Positions 622-54,475 of a stretch of DNA of 64,000 nt are shown here, one piece after another. This DNA comes from Epiperipatus broadwayi. Its lineage: Eukaryota > Animalia > Onychophora. Where the stretch lies: NCBI GenBank assembly GCA_028023455.1, contig JAQFVV010000003.1, positions 16,306,001 to 16,370,000 on the forward strand, written 5' to 3'. Below the pieces are notes generated by a model, which searched no databases, had not been told where the DNA came from, and was given only the letters and a program-made list of their open reading frames with translations. Each line of letters opens with the position of its first letter. The first letter of the stretch is position 1. The position numbers were made by a program, and so were the translations under genes.

Positions 622-1060
622 AATAGGAGAGAATATTTTTAAAAAAGTGGAAAATGTTTTAAGTAAATATGAATTTCAATGGAGCTTACTGGAATGAAGA
701 ATGATATGTGACAAAACAATACTAAGATTTTTTTTTTTTTAAAAGTAGTATGTCATTATTTCATGGATGTTTTAGAATTTATCAATTAACTTATTTTCTG
801 ATTTGATGAATAAGTACAAACATTTGGCTTATTTCACTAAAGTTTGCTGACTGTCTTGCCATCAGACATTAAAAAGTTTTTATGACATGAAAAATGCAAT
901 ATCATAGAATCACTTATCATACATCAATGATTTTAAATGTCAGTAAAATTTGGCCTTTGTGGTTGACCATTTCCATGTGTTTGAAGAAATTAGGAATCCA
1001 ACATCAAGATAGAAACAAGCTTATTAATCAAAACATGACATTATAAAAACTTTTCAGTTA
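622..1060 (+). mobile_element. hAT (Buster/SPIN, GTF2IRD2-like) transposase relic with internal deletion
   Basis: Hand translation gives ENIF KKVENVLSKYEFQWSLL, similar to the G.DIF..V..VL..Y.L.W..L block preceding TDGA, and later ..KIWPLWLT/DHF.., similar to F..KL.LW...L.HF. Heavily degraded. Confidence 0.5.
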
Positions 1061-1429
1061 AAACTTTGTTTCTAAAAAAATCGTGAAAAATAATATATTT
1101 TATTTTGAAACATGCAAATTATCAAGTTTGCATGTATTACATTTCGATTTTAACTCATACTTAACATTGTTTCTTTATTATTATTATAAAACAAATTTGA
1201 GCTCTGTTTTTTAGAATTTCATGTTGCTTAAATTGCAAGTTTAATTCATTTTTTAAATAGTGAAATATCTGATGACTTTTTAAATGAGGTTGTCAAAATA
1301 CAGTATAGTTTTGTTTTCAGCAAAAAATTTTAAGACTTAACTTTTATTTACTATCTGAATGCTTCAATAATAATAATAATAATAATTTGCGTGTAAAATT
1401 AACAACCTTTTTCTCTTACTATGGTTATT

Positions 1430-1900
1430 ATACCGTTTATCGGTAATTTAAGGTTTACACGTTATTAATTTTTAATGTATATCCGTTAACCTAGTTATGT
1501 TCGCATCTGATAATTCATTTATTTGAATATGCCAAATATTCTAGATAATGTAACTATTTTTCCTGGTCAAACAATCTGTTTATTCTAACTAAGTTTTAAT
1601 TTTGGTCAGGGAAGAACCAGCTTTTTATTTATTTTATAGGCACCAGGATTCATAAGTGAATCCACTGCTATCCCCCCCTCCTATTTCTAATATTCACGAC
1701 TGTATTTTGGTTTATTGTCCTCTGGAGGATTGTAATTTAAGGTAATGTATTGGCATCTATAATTGACAAAATTACCCAGACTTCAATAGTAATACTATAA
1801 CGATTAAATTAAATTTATGACAGAATAAATTATTTCTATGTTTTATCTCTCCCCCCCCCCCCATTACATTAATTCTACCACCCCTTCATTAATAATAATA
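1430..1900 (-). mobile_element. Penelope-like element 3' end / pseudo-LTR fragment (left palindrome arm)
   Basis: Reverse complement of ~4030-4445 and homologous to 48300-48700. Minus-strand translation IRNRRGDSSGFTYESWCL resembles the NRD.G..L...W motif at the end of PLE GIY-YIG ORFs. A degenerate hammerhead-like tail is visible in the 48405-48455 copy. Confidence 0.45.
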
Positions 1901-1989
1901 ACATAAAAGAATTTTAAAAAAATCACTCTTCAAATATAATATACATAAATTAATACCTTGAAATAACGAATATTTGAGTTCATAATATC

Positions 1990-2700
1990 AAAACTAATTT
2001 GTTTTTGTTTTTTTTTCTTCTTAATCAGCTTCTTCTAAAGTTTTATATAATTTCTTCTGAGCTAATTCTTCGTTGATATCATTTTCAAATCCTTTCTGAC
2101 AATGATTTAATATTTTTTTGAAATTCACACATTGGTTCTCTGGATCATCTTCTACAGATACTTTTATAGTTCCCGAACATTTGTACACGTGCATAAGCAA
2201 CATTAAAAGTGGGTTCATCCACAGTCTCATCAAAAACTAAATCATGGGCCTCAATTCATTGTCGATTTTCAGCTTCTATATTTGCTGGAAAAGAGTATCA
2301 AATTTTTGAGGTCTAAACTTATTTTGAATACCACGGAATTTATGATATAAATCTTCAGATTCTGCTTTTTCTGTAGTTTATTTTTCTGTTAAATTCTCAC
2401 CAACTTCTTTAAGATGAGGGAGGCACCATGCATTTTCAGTTTCATATAACTTAACATCTGTATTTAAGCTGACATTAGGTATAATTTTACAAGTTTCTCT
2501 TTGTTTGCCTTGCTGACATGTTCTGTGGCCCATGCTTCCTGGAAATCTTGGAGAAAACTTCACATAGTCTGGAGTGAAATCTGGAATACTACTAAATGAT
2601 GTCAATATATTGATCTTATTCATGATATGATTGCCATTTCAAGGTTTGTTAACTGTATCTTTAACGACTTCTAACTTAGGCAAATCATGTGGTTTTTCTA
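1990..2700 (-). pseudogene. eIF4G: eIF4G pseudogenic fragment (post-4E-binding linker + N-terminal half of MIF4G), left arm of palindrome
   Basis: Translates as KPHDLPKLEVVKD..PDFTPDYVK..QQGKQRETCKII..DVKLYETENAW..EDLYHKFRGIQNKFRPQKFDTL..DLVFDETVDEPTFNVAYA..VNFKKILNHCQKGFEND. This is collinear with eIF4G KPEGLP..PDFTP..RRSQQG.RKE.RKII..KL.KAE.AW..LNKLTPQ.F..EP.FSVAYA..VNFRKLLLNRCQKEFEKD. Contains stops, frameshifts and a deletion; no intron seen. Confidence 0.9.
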
Positions 2701-3420
2701 AATTAGAAGTTGTTAAAGATATAGCCAATAAACTTCAAAATGACAATCTTATCATTAATAATGTCCATGTATTAAGGTCATTTAGTAATGCTCAAGATTT
2801 CATTCCAGGTTATGTAAAGTCTTCTGCAAGACCTCCAGGAAGCATAGGCTATAGAACATATCATCAAGGAAAACAAAGAGACCTAGTAAAATTATATCCA
2901 ATGTTAGCTTAAATAAACATGTCAAGTTACATGAAACAGAAAATGCATGGCACCCCCTCATCTTAAAGATAAAGAAGTTGATAAGGAGAATTTAACAGAA
3001 AAAGAAGCTACAGAAAAAGCAGAATCGGAAGATTTATATTGCAAATTCTGTGATATTTTAAATAAACTTACATCTCAAAAATTTGATACTCTTCTCTAGC
3101 AAATATAAGAGCTGAAAATTGATAATAAATTGAGGTTCAAATGAGTTACTGATTTAGTTTTTGATAAGGCTGTGGCTGAACGTAGTTTTAGTGTTGTTTA
3201 TGCAAATTTGTGCAAATGTTTGGGAACTATAAAAATACCTATAGCAAATGGTAAAGAGAATAAATGTGTGAACTTCAGAAAAATATTATTAAATCGTTAT
3301 CTGAAAGGATTTGAAAAAGATATCAATGAAGATTTAGCTCAAAATAAATATATATAAAGTTTTAGAAACTGATTTGGAAGAAAAAAAAACAAATTAGTTT
3401 TGATATTACAACTCAAATAT
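2698..3420 (+). pseudogene. eIF4G: eIF4G pseudogenic fragment, right arm of palindrome
   Basis: SKLEVVKDIANK..QDFIPGYVK..HQGKQRD..ENAW..EDLYCKFCDILNKLTSQKFDTLL..DLVFDKAVAERSFSVVYANLCKCLGTIK..VNFRKILLNRYLKGFEKD (ORFs 2631..2912 and 3172..3357). Several in-frame stops. Confidence 0.9.
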
Positions 3421-3463
3421 TCGTTATTTCAAGTATTATTTATGTGTATTATATTTGAAGAGT

Positions 3464-4027
3464 TGTATTTTTATATTGGAAAATTTAACTTTATTTAAAT
3501 ATTTCAAATACATTCAACTGTTAGTAATATCACACCAAACAGGTTAGTATATGTACAATGTTTCAAGAGGTATAATTCTCCCCTCTTCTTCAGGTGTTGC
3601 TGGCCTAACCAGTGACAGTACTAGCATGGAATTTGAACCTGGACCCTTAGATTTTTGAGCATTGAATTTTAAGATAACACTCTATTTGAGATGTATTATT
3701 CTTCCCTCTTCTTCAGGTGTTGCTGGCCTGACCAGTGACAGTAGTAGCATGGGATTCAATACTCAAAAATCTAAGGTCCAGGTTCGAATCCCATGTTAGT
3801 ACTGTCACTAGTCAGGCCAGCAACACCTGAAGAAGAGAGAATAATACCTCTCGAAAAGTGCATATACTAATCTGTTTGGTGTGCTATTACTAACAGTTAA
3901 ATGTATTTGAAATATTTAAATAAAGTTAAAATTTTCTGAAGACATTCAATACGCATATTAGATGATGGAAATAGTCCATTATAAAAATACAACTAGAACA
4001 CTATCATCACAAACTTTCAGGAAAACA
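3464..4027. mobile_element. TSD-flanked fold-back insertion of a tRNA-head SINE-like unit carrying a hammerhead-like core
   Basis: 13-bp direct repeat ATATTTGAAGAGT at 3451-3463 and 4028-4040; the left palindrome arm has a single copy. Arms ~3482-3665 and ~3756-3933 are inverted, with an extra direct partial copy at ~3705-3757. B-box GGTTCGAATCCC at 3781-3792. CTGAAGA-A-GAGAG-loop-CTCTC-GAAA at 3827-3856. Confidence 0.7.
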
Positions 4028-4029
4028 AT

Positions 4030-4445
4030 ATTTGAAGAGTGTTTTTTTAATTCTCTTATGTTATTATTATTAATGAAGGGTGGTAGAATTAATAATAATA
4101 ATAAAAACCGAAAATAAACCATAGAAATAATTTATTTTGTCATATATTTAAGTGCTATAATATTCCTACTTAAGTTTTGGAATTTTGCCTTAAATTAAAA
4201 TCCTCCAGAGGACAATAACCCAAAACACAGTTGTGAGTATTAGAGATGGGGGAGGGGGGGCAGTGGATTCACTTATATATCCTGGCGCTTATGAAATAAA
4301 TAAAAAGCTGGTTATTCCATGACTAGAATTAAAACTTAGAATAAACTGGGGTTGTTTGACTAGGAAAAATAGTTACGTTATCGAGAATACTTGGCATATT
4401 CAAATAAATGAATTATCAGATGAGGACATAACTTAGTTAACGCAT
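4030..4445 (+). mobile_element. Penelope-like element 3' end / pseudo-LTR fragment (right palindrome arm)
   Basis: Reverse complement of ~1480-1940 (e.g. cagtggattcacttat..cctgg, aaaaagctggtt, aaaaatagttac..ttggcatattcaaataaatgaattatcagatg). Confidence 0.45.
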
Positions 4446-6711
4446 TACCAATAAACTGGTACTTTAGAGATTATAATATCTCTACTTTATAGATTATAAT
4501 ATCTCTACAGCTATTTTATATATATATTCTATAGATGTAAAACTGTATGTCTATAGCGATTATAACTTTTGCTTGGCTTGACAAGGAGCAAATTGCTTAC
4601 TTTATTTAAGTGGTCTCCTATACAAGCCTAGTGTATAGTTAATTGCTCATCATGAGAAAAAGAAAAATGACAATGAGTCATCAGCCTATGTAAAGTTATG
4701 GTCAGTGAATAAACTTATTTATAGTAGTGCATGAACAGGACTGCCACTTGCTCATCTATCATTTTAAGATTGACCCACTTGTCTCTCATCTGTCACTTTA
4801 AGATTGACCTGCAGTTACAGAAAACATCTATCGTTTGTATAATTCTACCCAAGGCTTTTTGACTAGCTTGTTTGTGGCAGTACACTACATTCTTTCTTTC
4901 TTAATTCTTTAGTTTGATAAAGCATATAACTAGTGATTTTTGCAATAATTGTATCATTTATGCTTTCTACAGCGCCTTTCTGGTCTACTGGTTTCCTGAT
5001 TGACTCTCTAGGAGCTCTGTTAAGCTATTATTTGAACTCTCTGTTGTATCAGTCTCATTGTTGCAATCTCTATTAATCAGTTTTCTGAGTCATTTATTTG
5101 GTCATTAGATTCTTCATTGATCAGTTGTGGGAGCTGTACATCTGGTTTCAGTTGACCTCTGTGTCATTTCTCTTCTGGTATTTATATAATAAATGATATT
5201 AAATTTTTTGGCAATCATTTACATTTCAATGATAAACTCTATACATGATTCTATCTTTTGGATATCACTGGGTTTTATCTGGATAAATGGTCTCTCTCTA
5301 AAACAAATTAAATTTGTTCTGAATTACTCTCGATAAGTAATTGTACAGAGAATTTTACCATAGTTGTTGGTAGGTATGGAGTGTTGTACTAAAAGTATTC
5401 ATGTGATTGGATGGTCCAGTTTCGACTTGATTCCTTAATGAATTTTTATTTATTCATATGGATTATCACTTTCTTGGTGAAATATAAGCAACAATATGAT
5501 TTTATACTAATACATTCACAAAAATCTCTGAATTAAGCTGAGATGAATGTTATCTCATTATTGAACATGATCACTTGAGATATCCATGGATAGGCTAAAA
5601 TTTTCTAAGAACTTCTATAATTACAGAAGAATGGGTTGAAAAATGTCTACAATTGTAATTCTTAGTATAGTCTATATGAATTCATGACCAGAGCTTTTTT
5701 AGCTATTGATCAAATTATATCTGGCATTTTTGCTGGCTTGTTCTATGCCAAGTTAGATATTTTTGATTTCTGGTTACCATATAAATGATCTTGAAATCAT
5801 TTTTATAAATATTCAAAAATATCTCTTGTACGGAAATTAAGACCTTGTAACCTTTCATGGGAATAACAACCTATACCCCTCCCAAGAAATATTATCAACT
5901 AAAGAAAGTTCATTGTAGCTGATCCAGAATGATTTGTGCAGAAATTTATAGCTGTTTTCTGGGCCAGATAAAGTTTATTATTATCTACCAGTTCTATTTT
6001 ATTTTAGTTTTTTTCTTCTCTATAATATAATTTAATTTTATTGACAGGTGATTCATTATTTTATCATTTGTTAAGTTTTAACTAAAAAATTGTATGTATC
6101 CAGCAGATTGTATCAACACACCATTCTTGGCCATGCCTTCAGTGGTAATTTATTTTCAATCCCCAGAAGTTATTTATAGTTTAAATTTATATGTTTATTT
6201 CTAGATTTAAATCATTAATATTTTTATACCTGTTGCTAAGGCAAGAACCAGTTTATCATTACGAGAATCATTATGTTCAGCTTTCTTTACTGTTCGTCCA
6301 TATTATTTTTTTCTAAAACCATCTTGTTGCTTTGAACAATTACTGACTCTATCACTATGGGTGATGCATTTCTGATCATTATTCAAGAATAGAGATCTAG
6401 ATCTCACATTTTAAAAGTATTGTTCCCTGCCTTTGTATATAATTATGAATGTGACTTACCTGCAGCATTGGACACCGTACCCATGTGGGTGCTGAATTCA
6501 TATTTTGAAAAGTCATTATCATGATATAAGGTTTAAATCATAATGAACTCAGGTAGCCAATGATTTCAAGCAAACATAGAATTTTGATTTCAAGTAGTTA
6601 ACCCAATCCAATTATATATGAGTATATTTCTATTATTAGCAAGTTGGAAAAAGGAAAAAAAATGTTGTCTAACAAAAATGTAGTAAATAGAAATGAAGAA
6701 TTGAATGATTG

Positions 6712-13100: not shown

Positions 13101-16100
13101 AAGTTCATCTAAATATTTATATGAAGGTGAAATTCAAAAATATTGAATTATCAACTAGTGATGGTTTTGTAAAGAACTTTGCATATGAATACATTTTATT
13201 ACCACATTTCTCAAATTAATATTAACTCATGTTTAGTTTCTTTATTGGTACATAGGTTGCAGAGAAACCAGAAATAATTGGATTGTGTGATGGTTATGGA
13301 CTGGAATAGTATAAAGAGGCATTCAAAGGCAATATTTTAATTGTTTTTATTGCTAGTTTATTTTATAATGTTGGAGAATATTGGCTAGAGTATCATTTAC
13401 TATATGAAGGAAGTTCAAAATAGAAAGGTTAGGGTAGGACCCGATGACATCCAATTGCCTCAACACAATATAAACATAAAAAATTTATCAATCTCTTCTC
13501 CAGCACTTTAAGCTCTTACTGTTCATATTGAAAACTAGCTTCATTTGAAGGTCTAACCATCCTACTGTTACAATATTATGTTTTATTTACATTTATCAAT
13601 ATGCTATTATAAAATCAATCTTAAAAATTAGATTTAATATTTCATTATAAATATTTATATTTGTGGTTAAATATAAAAATTCAGAAAACTATTGAACCTT
13701 CACAACAGTCACCTTGATTAAAGAATATAATAAAGAAATTGCACTGTTTTAAGTGTTTATGGAATTGAATGAATATTATTTATGTTTACAAATTTACTGA
13801 ACAAAAAAAATCTCAACAGATAGTTCATTTACTTATTCTTGAAAGCTCAGCCAAGACTATTTTTTCCTATTCAAAACAAACAATCACCTAGTGTTTTTAT
13901 TCTGAAGCTTGTCCTGAAAAACTGCCACAATTCATTCGTCAGTCAGTCAAGCAGTTGTTTATCTATTTCTTTTTAAATGTTCATATAACACAATGAAAGA
14001 TATTTAAAATATCCGAAATTGTCATTCTAGAAAGAAATTTAAACTGTGATTATCATACATGGTTTCAATTTTTTCGAGGCAAAGTTGCTTTAAAAGTAGC
14101 ATTGCTCATAGAATTATTGTAACCCGTCAATGCACTCTCATTTGCAAATTCTACATTATTCTATATCTACTTATTATTCATGCTTATATTCTGCTGACTT
14201 ACAATAGTATGATTAATCAGATATTCCATATATTTTTTCTCAAAAATAACAATTGATAAACTTCAACTATTCAAAGATTATGTTTCCAACTTCTGCATTT
14301 AAAATCATTTACCTGCATTAGTAGCAAATACTCATCACTAATGAATGATTGGGTATTATAACACAGTTATAATATTATTGCTTACATACTCCACCTATCT
14401 CTAGATAAAGAACTTGACATACAGGCAGACTTTAAGAATATGAAAAAGAGATAAGGATGACATAAGGGAATATAAGTTAGAACTGTCAATGAAAACTATA
14501 TAAAGGGTCAAAGTCTTTAAAAATATAGAGCAATATCTTGGTGTTAGAGCACTAACAAAAATAAAATTGTGCTATTATTAAAAATAGGGACAATGTCATG
14601 AATAAATAGAGGTGTAAAGAACTATATTGTGATAAAGAATCAGAAATCAAAGAAGCCTCTAATTATAAAATCTTTTGAAATTCTGGTGAGACATATGACT
14701 AAATATATGGCTTCATGATGAGATAGAATTATGATTTTTTTTAAAAAAAAACATCACAAAATAGAGAAATTATTGGCAAAGCTATATACCAAATATTTAC
14801 ATGCTAAATTTGTACCAGATGATTCGAAGCCAAAGTAATATTGATATTTAAGAAATATAGATATTGGAAATTATAGACTTGTCATTCTTCTGCTTTTATA
14901 CACAAGATGTTTATAGATATAATAAACACCTCCATACTTCCTCATTGTTTTTAAATTCATATAAATAAAGATACAATAAATGACAAATGATAAAAATCAG
15001 ATATATTAATATTTAACTGAGGTTTAAAGTTTATATCTGTGCTAGAGATAATCTCTAGTTTCGATAATGATTAGTAATAATCATTATTGTATTTATCTGA
15101 AATGGATGGCGTCAAAGTTGTGAGTAGAGGGAAGATGAAAATGTAACAAGATGTTTACTAAGATCATTGCAGCTTATTTAGTAAGAACTTTAGACATAAA
15201 CCAATCAAAATAAGATAAATGAATCTAAACATGTTTACAGTACAATGAATCACACTCAAATATTAAAATAAGTTACGGAAGAACCAATGAGTATGAATAG
15301 TCTTTTTTGTTGTTGTTAATAAAAAATCAAATTAAGAAATATATTTAAAAAAAGAAGAAAAACCATAACTTAAAATATATCAATAATGTATATAAATAAT
15401 ACAAAAAAAACTGTCAGATTGTGATAAACAGAGCAGCCAAAATTCAAAAAACATTAATCGCAAAGAACAATTTGCCAAGGGCTTTCAGTACAGTATACCA
15501 GAATCATGGAGACATATTGCACTGGAATATTAACTGTTCAGTTCCAATATGTCACCAGATTCTGATATACTGTACTGAAAGTGCTTGGCAAATTATTCTT
15601 TGCGATTAATGGTTTTTGAATTTTGGCTACTCTGTTTATCAAGATTTATATGTGAAGAATAATTTTCAATAATGTATATAGGTATATAATCTGAGGTAAT
15701 TAATATTATATATAATTAACATATTACTATAATATAATTGTTTTTGTTTGTTTAATATTATCTTATTTAATATAAAAATTGAAGAAAGATAATTATTTAA
15801 ATAATTTATGACAATCTTTTCTTACAATAAAAGCTAGATAAGGCTAACTAGAAAAAGAATGAAATTTTGTGTGAAATATATTTAATTTATATAGCTAACT
15901 AAATAATAATATAATAAATTTGTAAATTATGAGCATTCCAGTGTTAATTAAAGCTTAAGAATATTAAGAAAGACTCAACAATGATTATATTATGTGATGA
16001 TAATAAGGAATTAATATTGATATGAGTGTATAGCTGATAGTCCATACCTTCAAAGCTTTTTTCAATACTTTTATAAAAAGTATTTTGTGGAATTTACATG

Positions 16101-19100
16101 AGCAGACAAGAAAATAAAAATACATAGATAGTACTCAAATCAATTAGATTTTGTAAATGAAGTGGTTATTTTTGCAAATAATGCTTTTGAGATTCAAGAA
16201 ATAAAAGTTATTATATGAATGCAAGAAAGTAGGCTTAAAGTTAGATACTAAAAAGATTTTATTATTATTCATTGATTTAAAAAAAGAAAAAATAATTAAT
16301 TAAAAATATCTTAGATTATTAATGATGCTATGCATATGGAAACAATGGATAAAGTTAATTAAACTTGGATGAAAGTATGTACGGTTGTTATTAAAAAGAA
16401 AGGTGCATGTGAGAAAATGGGTCTGACAATGCTATCATATAGGATAATCAGTAGATATGAGCAATACTTAGACTGTAGATTACAAAGTAAAATACATGGG
16501 TGGAAGAATAAGCAGGTACCATTGACATTATTGAAAGAGATAAATGACTGAAGTGGAATTGAACTGAAGCCTGAGATATTGTGAAAAAGCCTAGAATAAG
16601 ACCACATATAAAAGAATAGACTATCAAGAAAGTTTTGGGGATTGATGTGGTAAAGAAAAGTTATGGATTAGACAACTGGATTACCCCACAACTTCTACAA
16701 TGCATATTTGTATTATAAATATTATAAAGTTACATCTGATACCGTTTTAGAGGAAAGTGTAGTTTTGTAATATAATTAAGGTTCCAAATTTGATTTTTAA
16801 TATTGTAAGCATTATTTACAATATGTGCTTATATAACCAGAGATTGCAAAAAATGGATAATAAAATTGCTTTTGTTTAGATTTAATTGATATAGCTTCTA
16901 CCTGGGATCAGTTGTTGGTTGCTTTCTTTTAGGAAATGAATGATCAAATATTATAATAAATACATTTGATTTTTATTATTGTGGAGATTTTTTACAATAT
17001 GTATTATAATATTTGTATAAAAAAAGTAGAAAAAAAATGTAGAAATAAAATTACTTACATTTAGACTAAAATGATATGGGATACCACTAAACCCCCAAAT
17101 AAGTAACATGAAACATATTATTTGATCAATTTTTCAAAAAAAAGTTATCGCTAGAAAGGTACCAAGATGACATCTGCTGAATATATAAAATTAAGGCACC
17201 AATATCTCAAACAAGTTCTTATTTAATAAATGCAACAAGAGAAAATATTTAAAACTCTATCTAGAATATTCCTATCCCCAGACCAATTAGTTTTGAGCTT
17301 ATGGCTCATCTCAATGAGGAGCTAGAACATTCAGATACGAGATCCAAAATATTAACTCAAAACCCAGCACTTATTTAAGACATATCTAATGAGAAGAAAA
17401 TCTGAAATTTTCAGACATAAAAATGTCTTTAAGTCCAGCTGCTTAACTCAAGTAGTTATATGGGACTGAACCAAATTCAAATCTACCATATATTAGCCTT
17501 AGCATCACCAAAGTTTTAAACGTAAAATTATAATAATCAATAAAGCAAGTCATATATAATGTGACATTGCTTTTAAAAAGCTTATATTTACAAATATGTA
17601 ATATATAATATAGGAAGCATACCAATAGCTCAAACAAGCTCTTATTTAATAAGTGTAATAAGAGAAAATATTTAAAATCTCTCTATCTAGAATATTCCTA
17701 TCTCCAGACCAATTGGTTTTGAGCTTATGGTTCATCTCAATGAGGAGCTAGAACATTCAGACACCAAATCTAAAATATCAACTCAAAACCCAGCACTTAT
17801 TTAATACATAACTATTGAGAAGAAAATCTGAAATTTTCAGACAAAAATGTCTTTAAATCCCACTATCTAACTCAAATTGCTTTTGTATTTAAACATATTT
17901 TTATGACTGAAAATTTCAGATTTTCTTCTCAATAGTTATGTATTAAATAAGTGTTGGGTTTTGAATTGATATTTTAGATCTAATCTCTGAATGTTCTAGC
18001 TCCTCCTAAGGTGAGCCATAAACTCAAAACCAATTGGTCTGGAGATAGGAATATTCTAGATAGAGATTTTAAATATTTTCTCCTACCACACTTATTAAAT
18101 AAGAGCTTGTTTGAGCTATTGGTATGCTCCCTATATTACATATTTGTAAATACAAGCTTTTTAAACGCAATGTCATGTTATATATGACTTGATTTATTGA
18201 TTATTAAAATTAAGGCACATTCTAGTAGCCGTTAATGGTTAGTTGAAGAGATTTTTATCTTATAGTGAATTGATAATGATTTAAAATAAAGATGTAGGCT
18301 TCAGTTTTGCATATCATATTGAAACATCTGTTTCACTTGTATTCAGCATTAGAGATGATCAAATTGCATGTTCATTCAGTATTGCCAGACTTTAAAATAC
18401 TTCCTGGATTTTGTGAGATTTTATCATATTTACAATGAACTATGCTAGAGTGTGCACAGCCAATGTTTCTATTAACAATAACTATAATGTTTGATCTTGA
18501 TGTGCATATGCTTGTTCTTCTTTTTGCCAAATGATCTCATAAATATCTTTATCCGTGATGAGCTGAATTGTTTGAAATCACATTTCATATTATTTTAATA
18601 TCATTGATATTTTTAAATCATTAGGATTTACAATACTATTGATATTTCATAATTGTGTTAACCACATGCATGCATCATATATATTGACCACAGCTTTTTA
18701 CTAATGTCAACTGTGTAAACTTACCATTGCTATACTAAATCCAATGGTTGTTAACCTTGATAATATCAGTCAAAAATATTTGCTTTATAATATTAATATT
18801 AAGTAATTAATATTTTATAAACTGTCATTCTCATCATGGAGTTAAAAATTATATTTTTAGGATTTATTTTATCTGGTAAATTGAAACTACTTTCTAGCAT
18901 CATCCAACTAAATAAGTCAAGAAAGCATTTGCAGTACTGTCTCTCCACACCACTACTTTTCACTATTTACATTGAACAGTTTATAGATGGCACTACCCTC
19001 TCCTTGTGTAGATGACATATTTCTTACATTTCCAGAAATCACTAATATACTAACATTTTTCAATAATTTCAGAATCATAATGGCTCAGATACCAGATTGT

Positions 19101-48299: not shown

Positions 48300-48700
48300 T
48301 ATTCCTATCTCAGGACATGGTTATTGTCAAAGCCTTGAGTTGGGCCACCATTGTACGTCCATGGTATAATTAGGGTTTTTATGAGTTAATTATCTTGTAT
48401 TCAATGACCAAGCTACGTTCGATTTGATAAATTTTCACCAGAAAATTTCAGTGAATTTTATTGAACACAGTTATTTTTCCTGGTCGCACAACTCGCTAAA
48501 CATAATTAAAGTTGAACAATAGAGAGGAGAGAACCAGCTTTCAATTTATTTGAAAAGGCACCAGGATTCTATGTAAGAATCCACTGGCTAAACCCCACCT
48601 ATTTATTTAGTCTCAATAAAATTACTTGGAATATCCGGAGGATTGTATTTTCAAGTACAGCATCGGCAATTTACTTAATCAAATTATAAGGGTTAAATTT
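48300..48700 (-). mobile_element. Third copy of the Penelope-like 3'/pLTR repeat family
   Basis: gaaccagcttt..aggcaccaggattc..gaatccactg..ggaggattgta is shared with ~1610-1745. The minus strand shows AATAAA then CTGAAA..hairpin..CGAACGTAG, a degenerate hammerhead-like tail. Confidence 0.5.
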
Positions 48701-50225: not shown

Positions 50226-50722
50226 GAACTGGAATTTTTTAAGTAATGCGCTCTTGATTGCAATTGTAGCTTCATTTAAGTAATAAAAAAAATTGTTTAT
50301 AATGTAGTTTTGTTAAGCTTTTTCTTTTAAAAAAAAAAAAATTCAAATAAAAAGAAAAAAATGTCAAACAATTTTAAACAAAGAAGTTACTGATTTCTTA
50401 TATATAAATAATTATGTACACATACTATGATATATACATAAAGAGTATACTATTAATTTACAGCAGAAATATCCAGTGTTATATATATATGTGAAATTGA
50501 TTTAAAGTAAAATTATACATATTAAGTGAAATTCATGTACAATATAGATTTGGCAAGCATTTTTTTTAAAAAAAAAATTCCAATCAAAAGCAAAAATGTC
50601 AAACACTTCATTTAAAAGAATATTTTATATTTTTAATCACTTATACTCTATGTACACATACAAAATATATACACATAAGGGGTATATATTTTAACTTATA
50701 GCAGAAATATCTAGTGATATAT

Positions 50723-53700
50723 AGGTAGTAGTTTGGAGACCATATTGCCACCGTCATATGGCGCGACACCATCAACAACTGGTCTGAAACTTGCAAGTGA
50801 TAAATTTATTTACGAAGTGGCTGAAAATTGACAAATAAAAATGCCTAAGGCAAAATATGTCCACCAAATACATTGAAAACTACAAATTATAAAAAAAAAC
50901 CAAGACAATGCTAAAAAATTCAAATTATAAAAAAAAAAAGATGAATATATGAGAAAGAGCTACCCCCCTCCTAAAATCAAAATTTCTTCACTTAAATTGA
51001 CAAATAAAAATGCCTCAGACAATATATGTCCACCAAATACATCGAAAACTACAAATTATAAAAAAAAACCAAGAAAATGCTAAAAAATTCAAATTATAAA
51101 AAAAAATGATGAAAATACGAGAAAGAGCTACCCCCTCCCTCTAAAATATGAAAATTCACAAAGAAGCATGGCGGACAAAGAGCGGGAAATACGAAAACAT
51201 CAAATTATTTACTTTCAACATAAATATGCATCTAAGATCATATTAAAAAGCAATTAATTGTTCTCTGGCTTTCAAATTACTGCATATGTAAATTGAGCAG
51301 TAATATTTAAATAATCGAAAAGCAATACACAAAAAATAATTACCAACCCCTCCCCCAACTAATCAAATTATAACGAAATATGGAAAGCACCGAGTAACTT
51401 TTCTAAAATGTACTAAATCTTATCAATATTTTTAAAAATATTTAAGTAACAGCTATAATAATAACTCATAACACAGATTAATACATAGTAAATAATTAAA
51501 TATAATTATAGTAAGTTTGAAAGAGAAAGTAGAAAAATTACTTTGTTCCAGATTCGGTTCAGCGCCATTTGCACAATGATGAATTGATCATCACAATGTT
51601 CGCGATTCCCAGCAGATTAAAAAAATAATTTAACAGAAGAGATCTACAAACACTAGCAGTTATTTAAAGAAAGTTACGCACACACGTATATAATATACCA
51701 ATGCAATTTCCAATAATAAATGATTGTTTGCCAAAGAGAAAATATTTTTCTTAAAATATACTTTAGTATAATATTCTGTGCATAGTAAATATATATAAGA
51801 TGCATATTTCATTGTTTTATTTAAACAAAGTTGCAAATGCATTATATTTTTTAATGTGAGATGTCTAATTACCAACGTCAAATCCCTTTCTCCCCCCCCC
51901 CCAATAGCTTTAATCGACAAAGTAAGTCGGCATAGATTTTCAAAAAATATACTAAATACTTTTAAAAGACTTTCAACATCAAATTATTTATCTTTAAAGT
52001 AATTAATTTTTTTCTGGCTTTGAAATTACGGCATATCTAAATTCATTAATAATATTTAATAATTATCAAGTAATACACAAAAAATAATTACCGATTACTT
52101 CATTTATAGTAGGCATTTGGATTTTTCCAGTTTTTTTGGTTCAAGAAATTGTTTTTCATGAAATATAATACCAATGCAATTCAAAATACGAAATTATTTT
52201 TCAGCATTTTGCCAAAAAGAAAATACTTTCTTAAAAATATACTTTAGTACCATATTATGGAAATTATATATAAGATGCATATTTCATTGTTTTATTTAAA
52301 CAAAGTTACAAATGCACCTGTATTTTTTTCTAATATGCTGAACTTTGTTGAATTAAAACATTGTTTGCGCCTATATTTTTTTAATGTAAGAGCTATTACG
52401 TCACATTTCAATTTGCAACTTTGTTTAAATAAAACAATGAAATATGCATCTTATATATAATTTCCATAATATGGTACTAAAGGATATTTTTAAGAAAATA
52501 TCTCCTTTGGCAAAATGCTGAAAAATCATTCCGTATTTTGAATTGCATTGGTGTTATATTTCGTGGAAGGGTATTGTTTGCGCCTATATTTTTTTAATGT
52601 AAGAAAGAGCTATTACGTCACATTTCAATTTGCAACTTTGTTTAAATAAAACGTAATGAAATACGCATCATAATTGTGTAAATGTCATCAAGTGTGTTCA
52701 ACACAAAATAAACTTAATCTTCTATTACTATTCAAGTGTGTTAAGAGCTTCAAAATGAAATGTGATGTGATTTTTATATGAAAAACAATTTTGTGAACCA
52801 AAACTGGAAAAATCCAAGAGCCTACTATAAATGAAGTAAGTAATCGGTAATTATTTTTTGTGTATTACTTGTTAATTATTAAATATTAATGAATTTAGAT
52901 ATGCCATAATTTCAAAGTCAGAAAAAAATTAATTGCTTTAAAGATAATTTGATGTTGAAAGTCTTTTCTTTTAAAAGTATTTAGTATATTTTTTGAAAAT
53001 CTATGCTGACTTACTTTGTCAATTAAAGCTATTGTGGGGGGGGGGAGTGATTTGACGGTAATTAGACATCTCACATTAAAAAATATAGATGCATTTGCAA
53101 CTGTTTAAATAAAACATAATGAAATATGCATCTTATATAAATTTACTATGCACAGAATATTATACTAAAGTATATTTTAAGGAAAATATTTTCTCTTTGG
53201 CAAACAATCATTTATTATTGGAAATTGCATTGGTATATTATATATGTGTGTGCATAACTTTCTTTAAATAACTTTGCTAGTGTTTGTAGATATCTTCTGT
53301 TAAATTATTTTTTTAATCTGGGAATCACGAATATCGTGATTAACTCATCATTGTGCAAATGGTGCTGAACCGAATCTGGAACAAGGTAATTTTTCCATTT
53401 TCTCTTTTAAACTTACTATAATTATATTTAATTACTTACTATGTATTAATCTGTGTTATGAGTTATTATTATATCTGTTACTTAAATAATTTTTAAATAT
53501 TGATAAGATTTAGTACATTTTAGAAAAGTTACTCGGTGCTTTCCATATTTCATTATAATTTGATTAGTTGGGGAGGGGTTGGTAATTATTTTTTGTGTAT
53601 TGCTTTTTGATTATTTAAATATTACTGCTTAATTTACATATGCAGTAATTTGAAAGCCAGAGAACAATTAATTGCTTTTCAATATGATCTTAGATGCATA

Positions 53701-54060
53701 TTTATGTTGAAGGTAAATAATTTGATGTTTTTGTATTTCCCGCTCTTTGTCCGCCATGCTTCTTTGTGAATTTTCAGATTTTAGGGGGGGGGGAGCTTTT
53801 TCTCGTATTTTCATCGTTTTTTTTTTATAATTTGAATTTTTTAGCATTTTCTTGGTTTTTTTTATAATTTGTAGTTTTCGATGTATTTAGTGGACATATT
53901 TTGCCATAGGCATTTTTATTTGTCGATTTTCAGTCACTTTCGTAAATAAATTTATCACTTGCAAGTTTCAGACCGGTTGTTGATGGTGTCACAGCACCAT
54001 CTGGCGGTGGCAGACCCAGCACCATCTGGCGGTGGCAGTACGGTCTCCAAACTACTACCA
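50723..54060. mobile_element. 3.3 kb fold-back element (almost entirely inverted repeat, modular)
   Basis: Termini (A)GGTAGTAGTTTGGAGACC / GGTCTCCAAACTACTACCA; arms match from the ends to a centre near 52305-52415; internal duplications at ~50830-51140 and ~52570-52640; ATATAT on both flanks; no coding capacity. Confidence 0.85.
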
Positions 54061-54144
54061 ATATATATATATATCAACTATAAATGTTCCATCAATTTAA
54101 AGTACAATATACTTTTGCATTTTTATTTATTGTGCCCATACTAA

Positions 54145-54475
54145 AAAGTTGCAAATAATAGAGAGTTTTTTTTTTATTAAATGCTATTATTTATTGTATA
54201 CTAAAAAGAAAAAAAAATGTTTCTTCAATTCCAATTGGGGTTTTTAGATTTAACTTGAAATAAAAGCATGGGGGATCCAAAAATTAATTAAGTCAATCGC
54301 TACTTTTTATGAGGTTGACTTAATTAATTTCTGGAAACTCCTCTGCCCCAACCATGCTTTTATTTCAAGATAAATCTAAAAATCCCAATTGTGGTTAAAG
54401 AAAAAAGTTTTTTTCTGTTTAGTGCACAGTAAATAAAAGTATTAAATATATAAAAAAAATATAATCTCTATTATT
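54145..54475. repeat. ~330 bp imperfect hairpin
   Basis: ..ttagatttaacttgaaataaaagcatgg..aattaattaagtcaa / ttgacttaattaatt..ccatgcttttatttcaagataaatctaa.., loop ~15 nt near 54300-54313. Confidence 0.8.

Follow-up and report, generated by a model that had tools for sequence, protein, structure and literature searches.

A palindrome of eIF4G pseudogene fragments in Epiperipatus broadwayi: probably an old retrocopy that formed as an inverted pair

Mirror-image retrocopies and hairpin RNA loci

Reverse transcriptases can carry out hairpin-primed (snap-back) second-strand synthesis, and chimeric retrocopies and the twin priming of L1 are familiar outcomes of retrotransposition. In mouse oocytes, endogenous small interfering RNAs (endo-siRNAs) reportedly come from inverted repeats of pseudogenes, and the Drosophila hairpin RNA (hpRNA) locus Nmy is said to be of retro-origin. 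Here we describe a palindrome in the onychophoran Epiperipatus broadwayi whose arms carry, head to head, two pseudogene copies of one fragment of the translation factor eIF4G. It lies near the start of a 64,000-nt stretch of genomic DNA (hereafter the window; assembly GCA_028023455.1, contig JAQFVV010000003.1, positions 16,306,001 to 16,370,000, forward strand) that is AT-rich, with a G+C content of 28%. A preliminary description of the window had put the palindrome forward as a candidate hpRNA or endo-siRNA locus directed against eIF4G and had judged it to be old and largely neutral. We conclude that the locus is probably an old, inert, chimeric retrocopy palindrome that was formed as an inverted pair.

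How does this locus compare with the systems described so far? Like chimeric retrocopies and snap-back products, it appears to fuse host RNA to the 3' part of a retroelement, it has a short loop with microhomology at the turn, and the longer of its two copies is the one in cDNA polarity. It differs from chimeric retrocopies and from L1 twin priming in having neither poly(A) nor a target-site duplication (TSD), and in twin priming different parts of one element end up in opposite orientation, rather than two copies of one part. By analogy, the form of the locus would be that of a processed-pseudogene hairpin, like those that seed Drosophila hpRNAs and mouse oocyte endo-siRNA loci. Like the mouse loci, it is a hairpin in which pseudogene copies of an expressed gene stand inverted to each other; those loci, however, are defined by sequenced siRNAs, whereas the eIF4G locus is known here from sequence. 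Drosophila hpRNA loci are born from their targets, as Nmy was from Dox (PMC10317233, PMC10292708, 10.1101/2021.08.05.454923), and they resemble ours in being a long hairpin built from an inverted repeat of a coding-gene fragment, away from the parent. In functional hpRNAs the arms match almost perfectly, a primary transcript is defined and the siRNAs depend on Dicer-2; young selfish genes are the usual targets. The eIF4G palindrome, in contrast, has arms that are 86% identical, showed no transcript in the RNA-like runs considered below, and would have a core housekeeping factor as its target.

In the layout of its origin, the locus would match the head-to-head, 3'-ends-out insertions of Penelope-like elements (PLEs), with a host mRNA as the cargo. 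PLE insertions are 5'-truncated and often have an adjacent, inverted copy that is also 5'-truncated (Craig et al. 2021, PMC8557442). A PLE protein has been shown in vitro to cleave the two target strands and to extend each (Frangieh et al. 2024, PMC11167929), and retrotransposition in trans of host gene transcripts, intron-containing ones included, has been reported for PLEs (PMC8557442; PMC11167929). The eIF4G locus likewise consists of two copies that meet at their 5' ends and have their 3' ends on the outside, is strongly 5'-truncated and has no poly(A), and a further head-to-head retro-insertion is nested within it. Unlike a PLE, its arms showed no reverse transcriptase (RT) or GIY-YIG open reading frame (ORF), no pseudo-long terminal repeat (pseudo-LTR) and no hammerhead; its cargo is a fragment of a host mRNA, and any link of its outer-arm repeat to PLEs is putative. 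A one-end tail of 30-40 bp is a further trait of PLEs. A 35-nt stretch (1446-1480) is indeed confined to the left arm of the palindrome, but it is internal and has a counterpart in a solo copy of the outer-arm repeat.

The palindrome and its parent RNA

The fold-back axis lies at about 2688/2689, and the inverted repeat takes in 1430-2679 on the left and 2698-4461 on the right. A repeat finder returned collinear inverted pairs from 2496-2687/2690-2881 (79% complementary) outward to 1471-1574/4352-4455. When the left half was compared with the right half by blastn, two minus-strand matches were obtained, 1918-2679 with 3472-2698 (80.9%, E 9e-170) and 1471-1937 with 4455-4028 (78.8%, E 2e-76). 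For a global alignment of the arms, a nested insertion at 3474-4027 was removed; over 1131 aligned positions the arms are 86.3% identical, with 26 indel events and a Kimura two-parameter (K2P) distance of 0.154. The first stem pairs 2656-2679 with 2698-2721 at 22 of 24 positions around a loop of 18 nt (2680-2697). The preliminary description had given this stem as 2656-2680 versus 2698-2721 and the loop as about 17 nt, and its estimate of about 20% divergence over the innermost 190 nt or so agrees with the 79% pairing found here.

The true outer ends of the palindrome, 1430 and 4461, are reached once the left-only stretch at 1446-1480 is allowed for; beyond it, 16 further bases are paired. The insertion in the right arm and the full extent of the palindrome had not been noted in the preliminary description. 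The solo copy of the outer-arm repeat, at 48350-48686, contains the counterpart of this stretch. Hence, the 35-nt gap in the right arm is most likely a deletion there.

Both arms were matched by eIF4G proteins of fish, mussel and coral in tblastn searches (E 1e-12 to 1e-21, with 1e-19 for the right copy), and the Pfam MIF4G profile aligned to 3145-3354 over positions 37-95 of its 203 (E 4.8e-6). Judged by these matches, the fragment, which makes up the inner ~700 nt of each arm, spans the region from just 5' of the MIF4G domain to about mid-domain. The translation of the left copy includes EKPHDLPKLEVVKD...ENAW...KFRGIQNKFRPQKFDTL...NFKKILNHCQKGFEND and is broken by four stops plus frameshifts; the minus strand of the left arm, taken from 2698, translates as EKPHDLPKLEVVKDTVNKP*NGNH...KIIPNVSLNTDVKLYETENAW...KFRGIQNKFRPQKFDTL...NFKKILNHCQKGFENDINEE. 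The plus strand of the right arm encodes the same protein, and several stops and frameshifts are present in both arms. The left copy exceeds the right by about 18-23 nt at its 5' end, and on the plus strand it has the polarity of a first-strand cDNA. Read on the minus strand, the loop encodes K-P-H-D-L in frame with the left copy. A phmmer search with an 85-aa piece of the left arm as the query returned only four weak matches, while 120 eIF4G proteins, all of them at most ~60% identical to the arms, were retrieved by a profile search with arm pieces placed on a fish MIF4G scaffold. An exact search with the protein of an ORF of the window had no match.

A parent RNA was present among public sequencing runs, which were aligned, in contig form, on 1300-4600 at a likeness of at least 80%. 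In DNA run X1, contigs of the locus itself showed zero differences at a depth of about 30-38. An RNA-like run of the same species, X6, held an eIF4G contig of 1093 nt (depth 125). Bases 332-612 of this contig correspond to the left arm from 2702 down to 2422 (33 differences in 281 nt), and bases 613-1061 correspond to the right arm from 2954 to 3398 (44 differences and 6 gaps in 445 nt). Left 2422 and right 2954 are equivalent positions in the arm alignment; hence, the X6 contig represents a single, unbroken eIF4G RNA that is 88-89% identical to the arms and follows them colinearly for 730 nt. On both sides outside the arms, the contig is unrelated to them and has a stop-free translation, which on the 3' side reads EEIEDLENKV. 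That X6 behaves like RNA, not like DNA, can be told from the depth of a short interspersed element (SINE) relative to that of eIF4G: the ratio is ~24 in X6 versus ~50,000 in X1.

Were the arms copied from a spliced RNA? In the pre-MIF4G/MIF4G region, three and probably four intron positions of eIF4G are common to a mollusc, Mytilus galloprovincialis, and a cnidarian, Acropora digitifera, and such introns are therefore probably older than the cnidarian/bilaterian split. The three positions fall at 3028/2356, 3166/2224 and 3217-3229/2167-2170 of the window, and both arms are uninterrupted at every one of them. Because the arms are colinear with the RNA contig and lack the three conserved introns, we consider it likely that they are RNA-derived, that is, processed in origin.

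At 1999-2076, the A-rich end of the left copy of eIF4G is matched by a second X6 contig (depth about 36), which then runs in sense as TCAATCTACAAGGGTCACGC... and there resembles neither the arms nor the parent contig. It may represent a paralogue, an isoform or a misaligned stretch of low complexity.

Repeat tail and origin of the mirror copy

The pairing continues past the coding fragment. Beyond 3398 on the right and 1993 on the left, where the parent RNA diverges, the arms stay paired for ~560 nt more, and the left outer part matches 3399-3473 and 4028-4461 at 90% identity. The preliminary description had seen this continued pairing correctly but had taken the sequence for flanking non-coding DNA, whereas the outer arms are the repeat-family tail of the copied unit. 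Summed DNA contig depth is 316-2497 over the left outer arm and up to 2595 over the right, against about 35-38 for single-copy sequence, and the outer arms are repeated about 8-70-fold at a likeness of at least 80%. The eIF4G part has a depth of 35-145, which is essentially single-copy plus the parent. The repeat of the outer arms is also present in a second species (run X5), and one end of the solo copy at 48350-48686 corresponds to the outer end of the palindrome. We read the copied unit as 5'-eIF4G fragment-repeat tail-3', with the end of the copy coinciding with that of the repeat. Such an end is expected if an RT began at the 3' end of the repeat, and the coincidence of the palindrome end with a repeat-family end makes a retro-event more likely than a chromosomal duplication of DNA.

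In the tail itself, no ribozyme, tRNA, ORF or poly(A) was found, and ARAGORN found no tRNA gene in the whole window. Sub-threshold Rfam matches were miRNA-like only and simply reflect the hairpins. The blocks conserved between the solo copy and the arms hold two potential stems, GGATTC...GAATCC and CTGGT...ACCAG; with three copies to compare, these stems hint at a structured RNA.

The fourth intron common to mussel and coral falls 17-20 residues past the EFEND/EFEKE motif, and the arm junction, at 3398, lies 28 residues past GFEND. After the junction the arm goes on with GTTTTG (GTTTTGATATT) and the parent RNA with EEIEDLENKV, a sequence similar to that with which the next Acropora exon opens, EEELQKRKSDLEDQV. 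The eIF4G/repeat junction thus probably lies at the conserved splice donor of this fourth intron. If a retro-origin is granted, we lean towards a template that was a partly spliced pre-mRNA, which kept one intron and was read into a copy of the repeat inside it. A template switch, in which the RT jumps from repeat RNA onto eIF4G mRNA, is less likely. If the pre-mRNA reading is true, the parent exon should end in ...CAAATTA and be followed by an intron beginning GTTTTGATATTA....

When did the mirror copy arise? Only in the left copy does homology to the parent extend across the loop, as far as 2702. The right copy starts at CTAA (2698-2701), and these bases can pair with TTAG at 2676-2679, a microhomology of 4 nt. 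A loop that belongs to the left copy, with a second copy that starts on microhomology, is the product expected when a cDNA hairpin primes itself; the KPHDL loop had already been read as a snap-back signature in the preliminary description. The 5' ends of the two copies differ by no more than 23 nt, which speaks for a snap-back or for a template whose 5' end is fixed. The priming of one cDNA from each cut target strand, followed by joining at microhomology, would be compatible as well and would fit the PLE layout and the in vitro activity cited above; the data do not separate these routes.

Differences between the arms were polarised over 257 nt (2422-2679) with the parent RNA as the reference. 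Twenty-seven differences between the parent and the left arm were displayed and six more were not, so the counts are approximate: 18 differences are specific to the left arm, at most 28 are specific to the right arm, 6 are shared by both arms, and at 3 positions all three sequences differ. The tree of the arms and the parent would be nearly a star. Such a pattern implies that the arms split at or very soon after copying; by these counts, at most about a fifth of the copy's history would have passed before the split, and the six changes that both arms share may have occurred in the lineage of the parent. Together, the parent RNA, the asymmetry of the loop and the star-like pattern argue for formation in one step.

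We propose that the template was a chimeric RNA, with about 710-730 nt of spliced eIF4G coding sequence followed by ~560 nt of non-coding sequence ending in the dispersed repeat. Most likely it would have come from a partly spliced eIF4G pre-mRNA, read through the conserved splice donor into the repeat-bearing intron. Reverse transcription would have started at the 3' end of the repeat and halted inside the coding region, leaving a 5' truncation, and the two copies would have been joined 5' end to 5' end. By one route, the 3' end of the cDNA would fold on the 4-nt microhomology and copy itself; by the other, both cut target ends would prime a cDNA and the products would be joined, a layout that has been published for PLEs. 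Later, the arms would have decayed independently and neutrally, each accumulating about 0.08 substitutions per site, and the right arm would have received a SINE pair.

Could the mirror copy instead have been made from DNA? An existing eIF4G retrocopy, or a genomic exon with a piece of intron, might have been inverted and duplicated by replication template switching or by hairpin capping of a broken end, with no RT involved in the mirror copy. A short loop with 4-nt microhomology is also a signature of DNA fold-back inversions. The palindrome has neither TSD nor poly(A), the window holds further large non-coding palindromes (for example, 50641-54144), and 6 shared differences in 257 nt would permit a short single-copy phase. 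However, the outer ends fall at the end of a dispersed repeat family and not in arbitrary DNA, and the topology equals that of the head-to-head SINE pair, with its single TSD, that is nested within. The three missing introns make the copied unit, at least, RNA-derived. Moreover, a chromosomal event would normally yield a terminal or dicentric rearrangement and not a neat insert of 3 kb. We therefore regard a DNA-level fold-back as unlikely and favour the inverted retrocopy pair.

Decay, present state and neighbouring fold-backs

The decay of both arms looks old and neutral. Over the full arms, transitions compatible with G:U pairing number 58 for a plus-strand transcript and 49 for a minus-strand transcript (p = 0.44), and arm-to-arm substitutions are spread 14/18/18 over the three codon positions. 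CpG is depleted, with 11 and 9 observed versus 27 and 23 expected, and its decay runs both ways: 6 CpG sites of the left arm alone and 3 of the right arm alone stand opposite TG or CA in the other arm. The symmetry of the G:U counts, the even codon positions, the CpG decay and the stops and frameshifts in both arms all argue for neutrality. The preliminary description had noted an even split of transitions, changes at all three codon positions and reciprocal CpG decay in a hand alignment of the innermost nucleotides. Each of these observations was borne out, and with the star-like pattern they uphold its view of the palindrome as old and largely neutral. One arm has also taken a 554-bp insertion and a 35-nt deletion.

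Folding of 1994-3398 gave minimum free energies of -731 kcal/mol for the plus strand and -713 kcal/mol for the minus strand versus -276 kcal/mol for shuffles, with ~600 pairs, all of them arm to arm and in a symmetric register. A read-through transcript would thus fold as a long imperfect hairpin; nothing indicates siRNA output now. Four perfect duplex runs reach at least 21 nt, all of them in the AT-rich outer part. In the eIF4G part no perfect arm-to-arm run is that long, the longest being 20 nt. No locus-identical RNA contig was found over the eIF4G part in the two RNA-like runs of this species, X6 and X7, which are small (97 and 75 million letters, as contigs); only the parent mRNA was present. 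In the second species (X5, 231 million letters), essentially nothing lay over the eIF4G part, but coverage there is too low to call absence. The structural features of an hpRNA are present at this locus, and of the functional features, those that could be tested are absent. By this evidence the locus would now be inert.

We wondered if the palindrome might nevertheless be a working hpRNA gene, transcribed perhaps in the germline as an imperfect hairpin of ~1.2 kb and diced to siRNAs that tune eIF4G. Either strand does fold arm to arm far more stably than the shuffles, and the arms are similar enough to an expressed parent mRNA (88-89%) that some siRNAs could match it. The missing contigs are not decisive, since RNA-seq signal is depleted over the duplex arms of hpRNAs (PMC10317233). 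Yet no locus-identical contig appeared in either run, the two strands have near-equal energies, and wobble-compatible transitions show no strand asymmetry. The longest perfect duplex in the eIF4G part stops at 20 nt, the substitution pattern is star-like and neutral, and the 554-bp insertion splits the right arm. There is, further, no obvious gain in silencing an essential, single-copy translation factor. We conclude that the present function for which the palindrome had been a candidate is very unlikely.

Less probable still is a Pack-type origin, by which a DNA transposon of the fold-back or long-terminal-inverted-repeat class would have picked up an eIF4G fragment in each of its terminal repeats. 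The inverted repeats are long and their outer parts do come from a repeat family, but apart from the two arms and the parent, the eIF4G part has no further copies (depth 35-145). The one other copy of the family in the window stands alone, with no inverted partner, and no short TSD was found. A fragment that is free of introns and stops exactly at the apex is also more readily explained by a 5'-truncated cDNA than by capture of DNA.

Several points weigh against the inverted retrocopy pair that we favour. No A-run is present at 1430 or 4461, and alignment of the flanks of the palindrome for a TSD was no better than chance (p = 0.42). The outer arms hold no RT or endonuclease coding remnant. 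Rfam returned nothing in the window at gathering scores and no hammerhead or other ribozyme in 1000-5000 at E up to 1, and attribution to a PLE is circumstantial. The processed origin depends on one RNA contig and on the introns of two distant animals, and an intron-poor parent would weaken it. The missing locus transcript is weak evidence for inertness, given small contig runs and the depletion of RNA-seq over hpRNA arms noted above. Lastly, the outer part is less diverged between the arms than the eIF4G part (90.1% versus 83.7% identical, Fisher p = 0.002). This gap is due mainly, though not fully, to an AT-rich stretch (left 1817-2004) that is 93-96% identical. The innermost 100 nt, which are 77% identical, add to it, and the remaining stretches are 82-89% identical. 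We considered a gradient of divergence outward from the apex, which might point to gene conversion or to instability of the centre.

The insertion in the right arm is itself a mirror pair, of SINE-like elements (Table 1). Its TSD is unusually long, at 21-23 bp (3453-3473 and 4028-4050, ATATTTGAAGAGT.GT.TTTTT), and a single TSD surrounds the pair. A tRNA-like GGTTCGAATCC box lies near the centre and the tails point outward. Summed contig depth over the element is 0.5-2.4 million versus about 37, and the family is also found in the second species. Each arm of the pair contains a hammerhead-like motif, CUGAAGA...CGAAA; Rfam called no hammerhead in the nested insert at E up to 1.

The window is rich in fold-back structures. 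A second palindrome, at 50641-54144, has arms of about 1.7 kb that are about 92% identical, with 97 nt between them (around 52314-52410); it contains internal sub-repeats, shows no recognisable coding content and is unrelated in sequence to the eIF4G palindrome. Shorter fold-backs lie at 17316-18211, 15422-15641 and 54166-54457; their arms measure 80-120 nt, are 83-94% complementary and are separated by 50-500 nt. At 4460-4508, beginning exactly at the end of the right arm, a 23-bp unit, TACTTTAGAGATTATAATATCTC, is repeated 2.1 times at 96% identity; this tandem duplication may be unrelated slippage or an insertion scar.

Table 1. Coordinates, strand and basis of the features described, in positions of the window
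Feature	Position	Strand	Basis
Left eIF4G pseudogene copy, loop included	1994..2702	-	translation; parent RNA contig on 2702..2422
Right eIF4G pseudogene copy, sense on plus strand	2698..3398	+	tblastn; Pfam MIF4G; parent RNA contig on 2954-3398
Palindrome loop (apex), parent-derived, continues left copy	2680..2697		sequence; translation; parent RNA contig
Left arm, outer part: non-coding tail 3' of eIF4G fragment	1430..1993	-	pairing; repeat depth; solo copy; repeat 3' end ~1430
Left-only 35 nt	1446..1480	-	global arm alignment; solo copy at 48.4 kb with matching stretch
Right arm, outer part, proximal piece	3399..3473	+	pairs with 1918-1993
Right arm, outer part, distal piece, ends 4461	4028..4461	+	pairs with 1430-1937
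Later nested insertion, 554 bp: head-to-head SINE-like pair, 3' ends out	3474..4027		TSD; empty site in left arm; contig depth
Solo diverged (~65% identical) copy of outer-arm repeat	48350..48686	-	aligns to 1427-1774

What does the palindrome mean for the origin of hairpin loci? It is a clean, dated case of a host mRNA fragment copied as a mirror pair, and it links two literatures: that on the inverted insertion layout of Penelope-like and related retroelements and that on the birth of hpRNA genes from their targets. We give only a slim chance to a bolder reading, in which retroelement machinery captured a partly spliced eIF4G transcript and in that one event made a perfect hairpin gene of ~1.2 kb, with eIF4G siRNAs produced for a time before decay, or still at a low level in some tissue. 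If that reading were true, such insertions would be a one-step route to new hpRNA genes. The eIF4G copy itself is old and has decayed neutrally, and it illustrates one way in which a genome can acquire a hairpin directed against its own gene. Should captures of this kind prove common in this genome, the recent ones among them would be the obvious places to look for functional hpRNAs.

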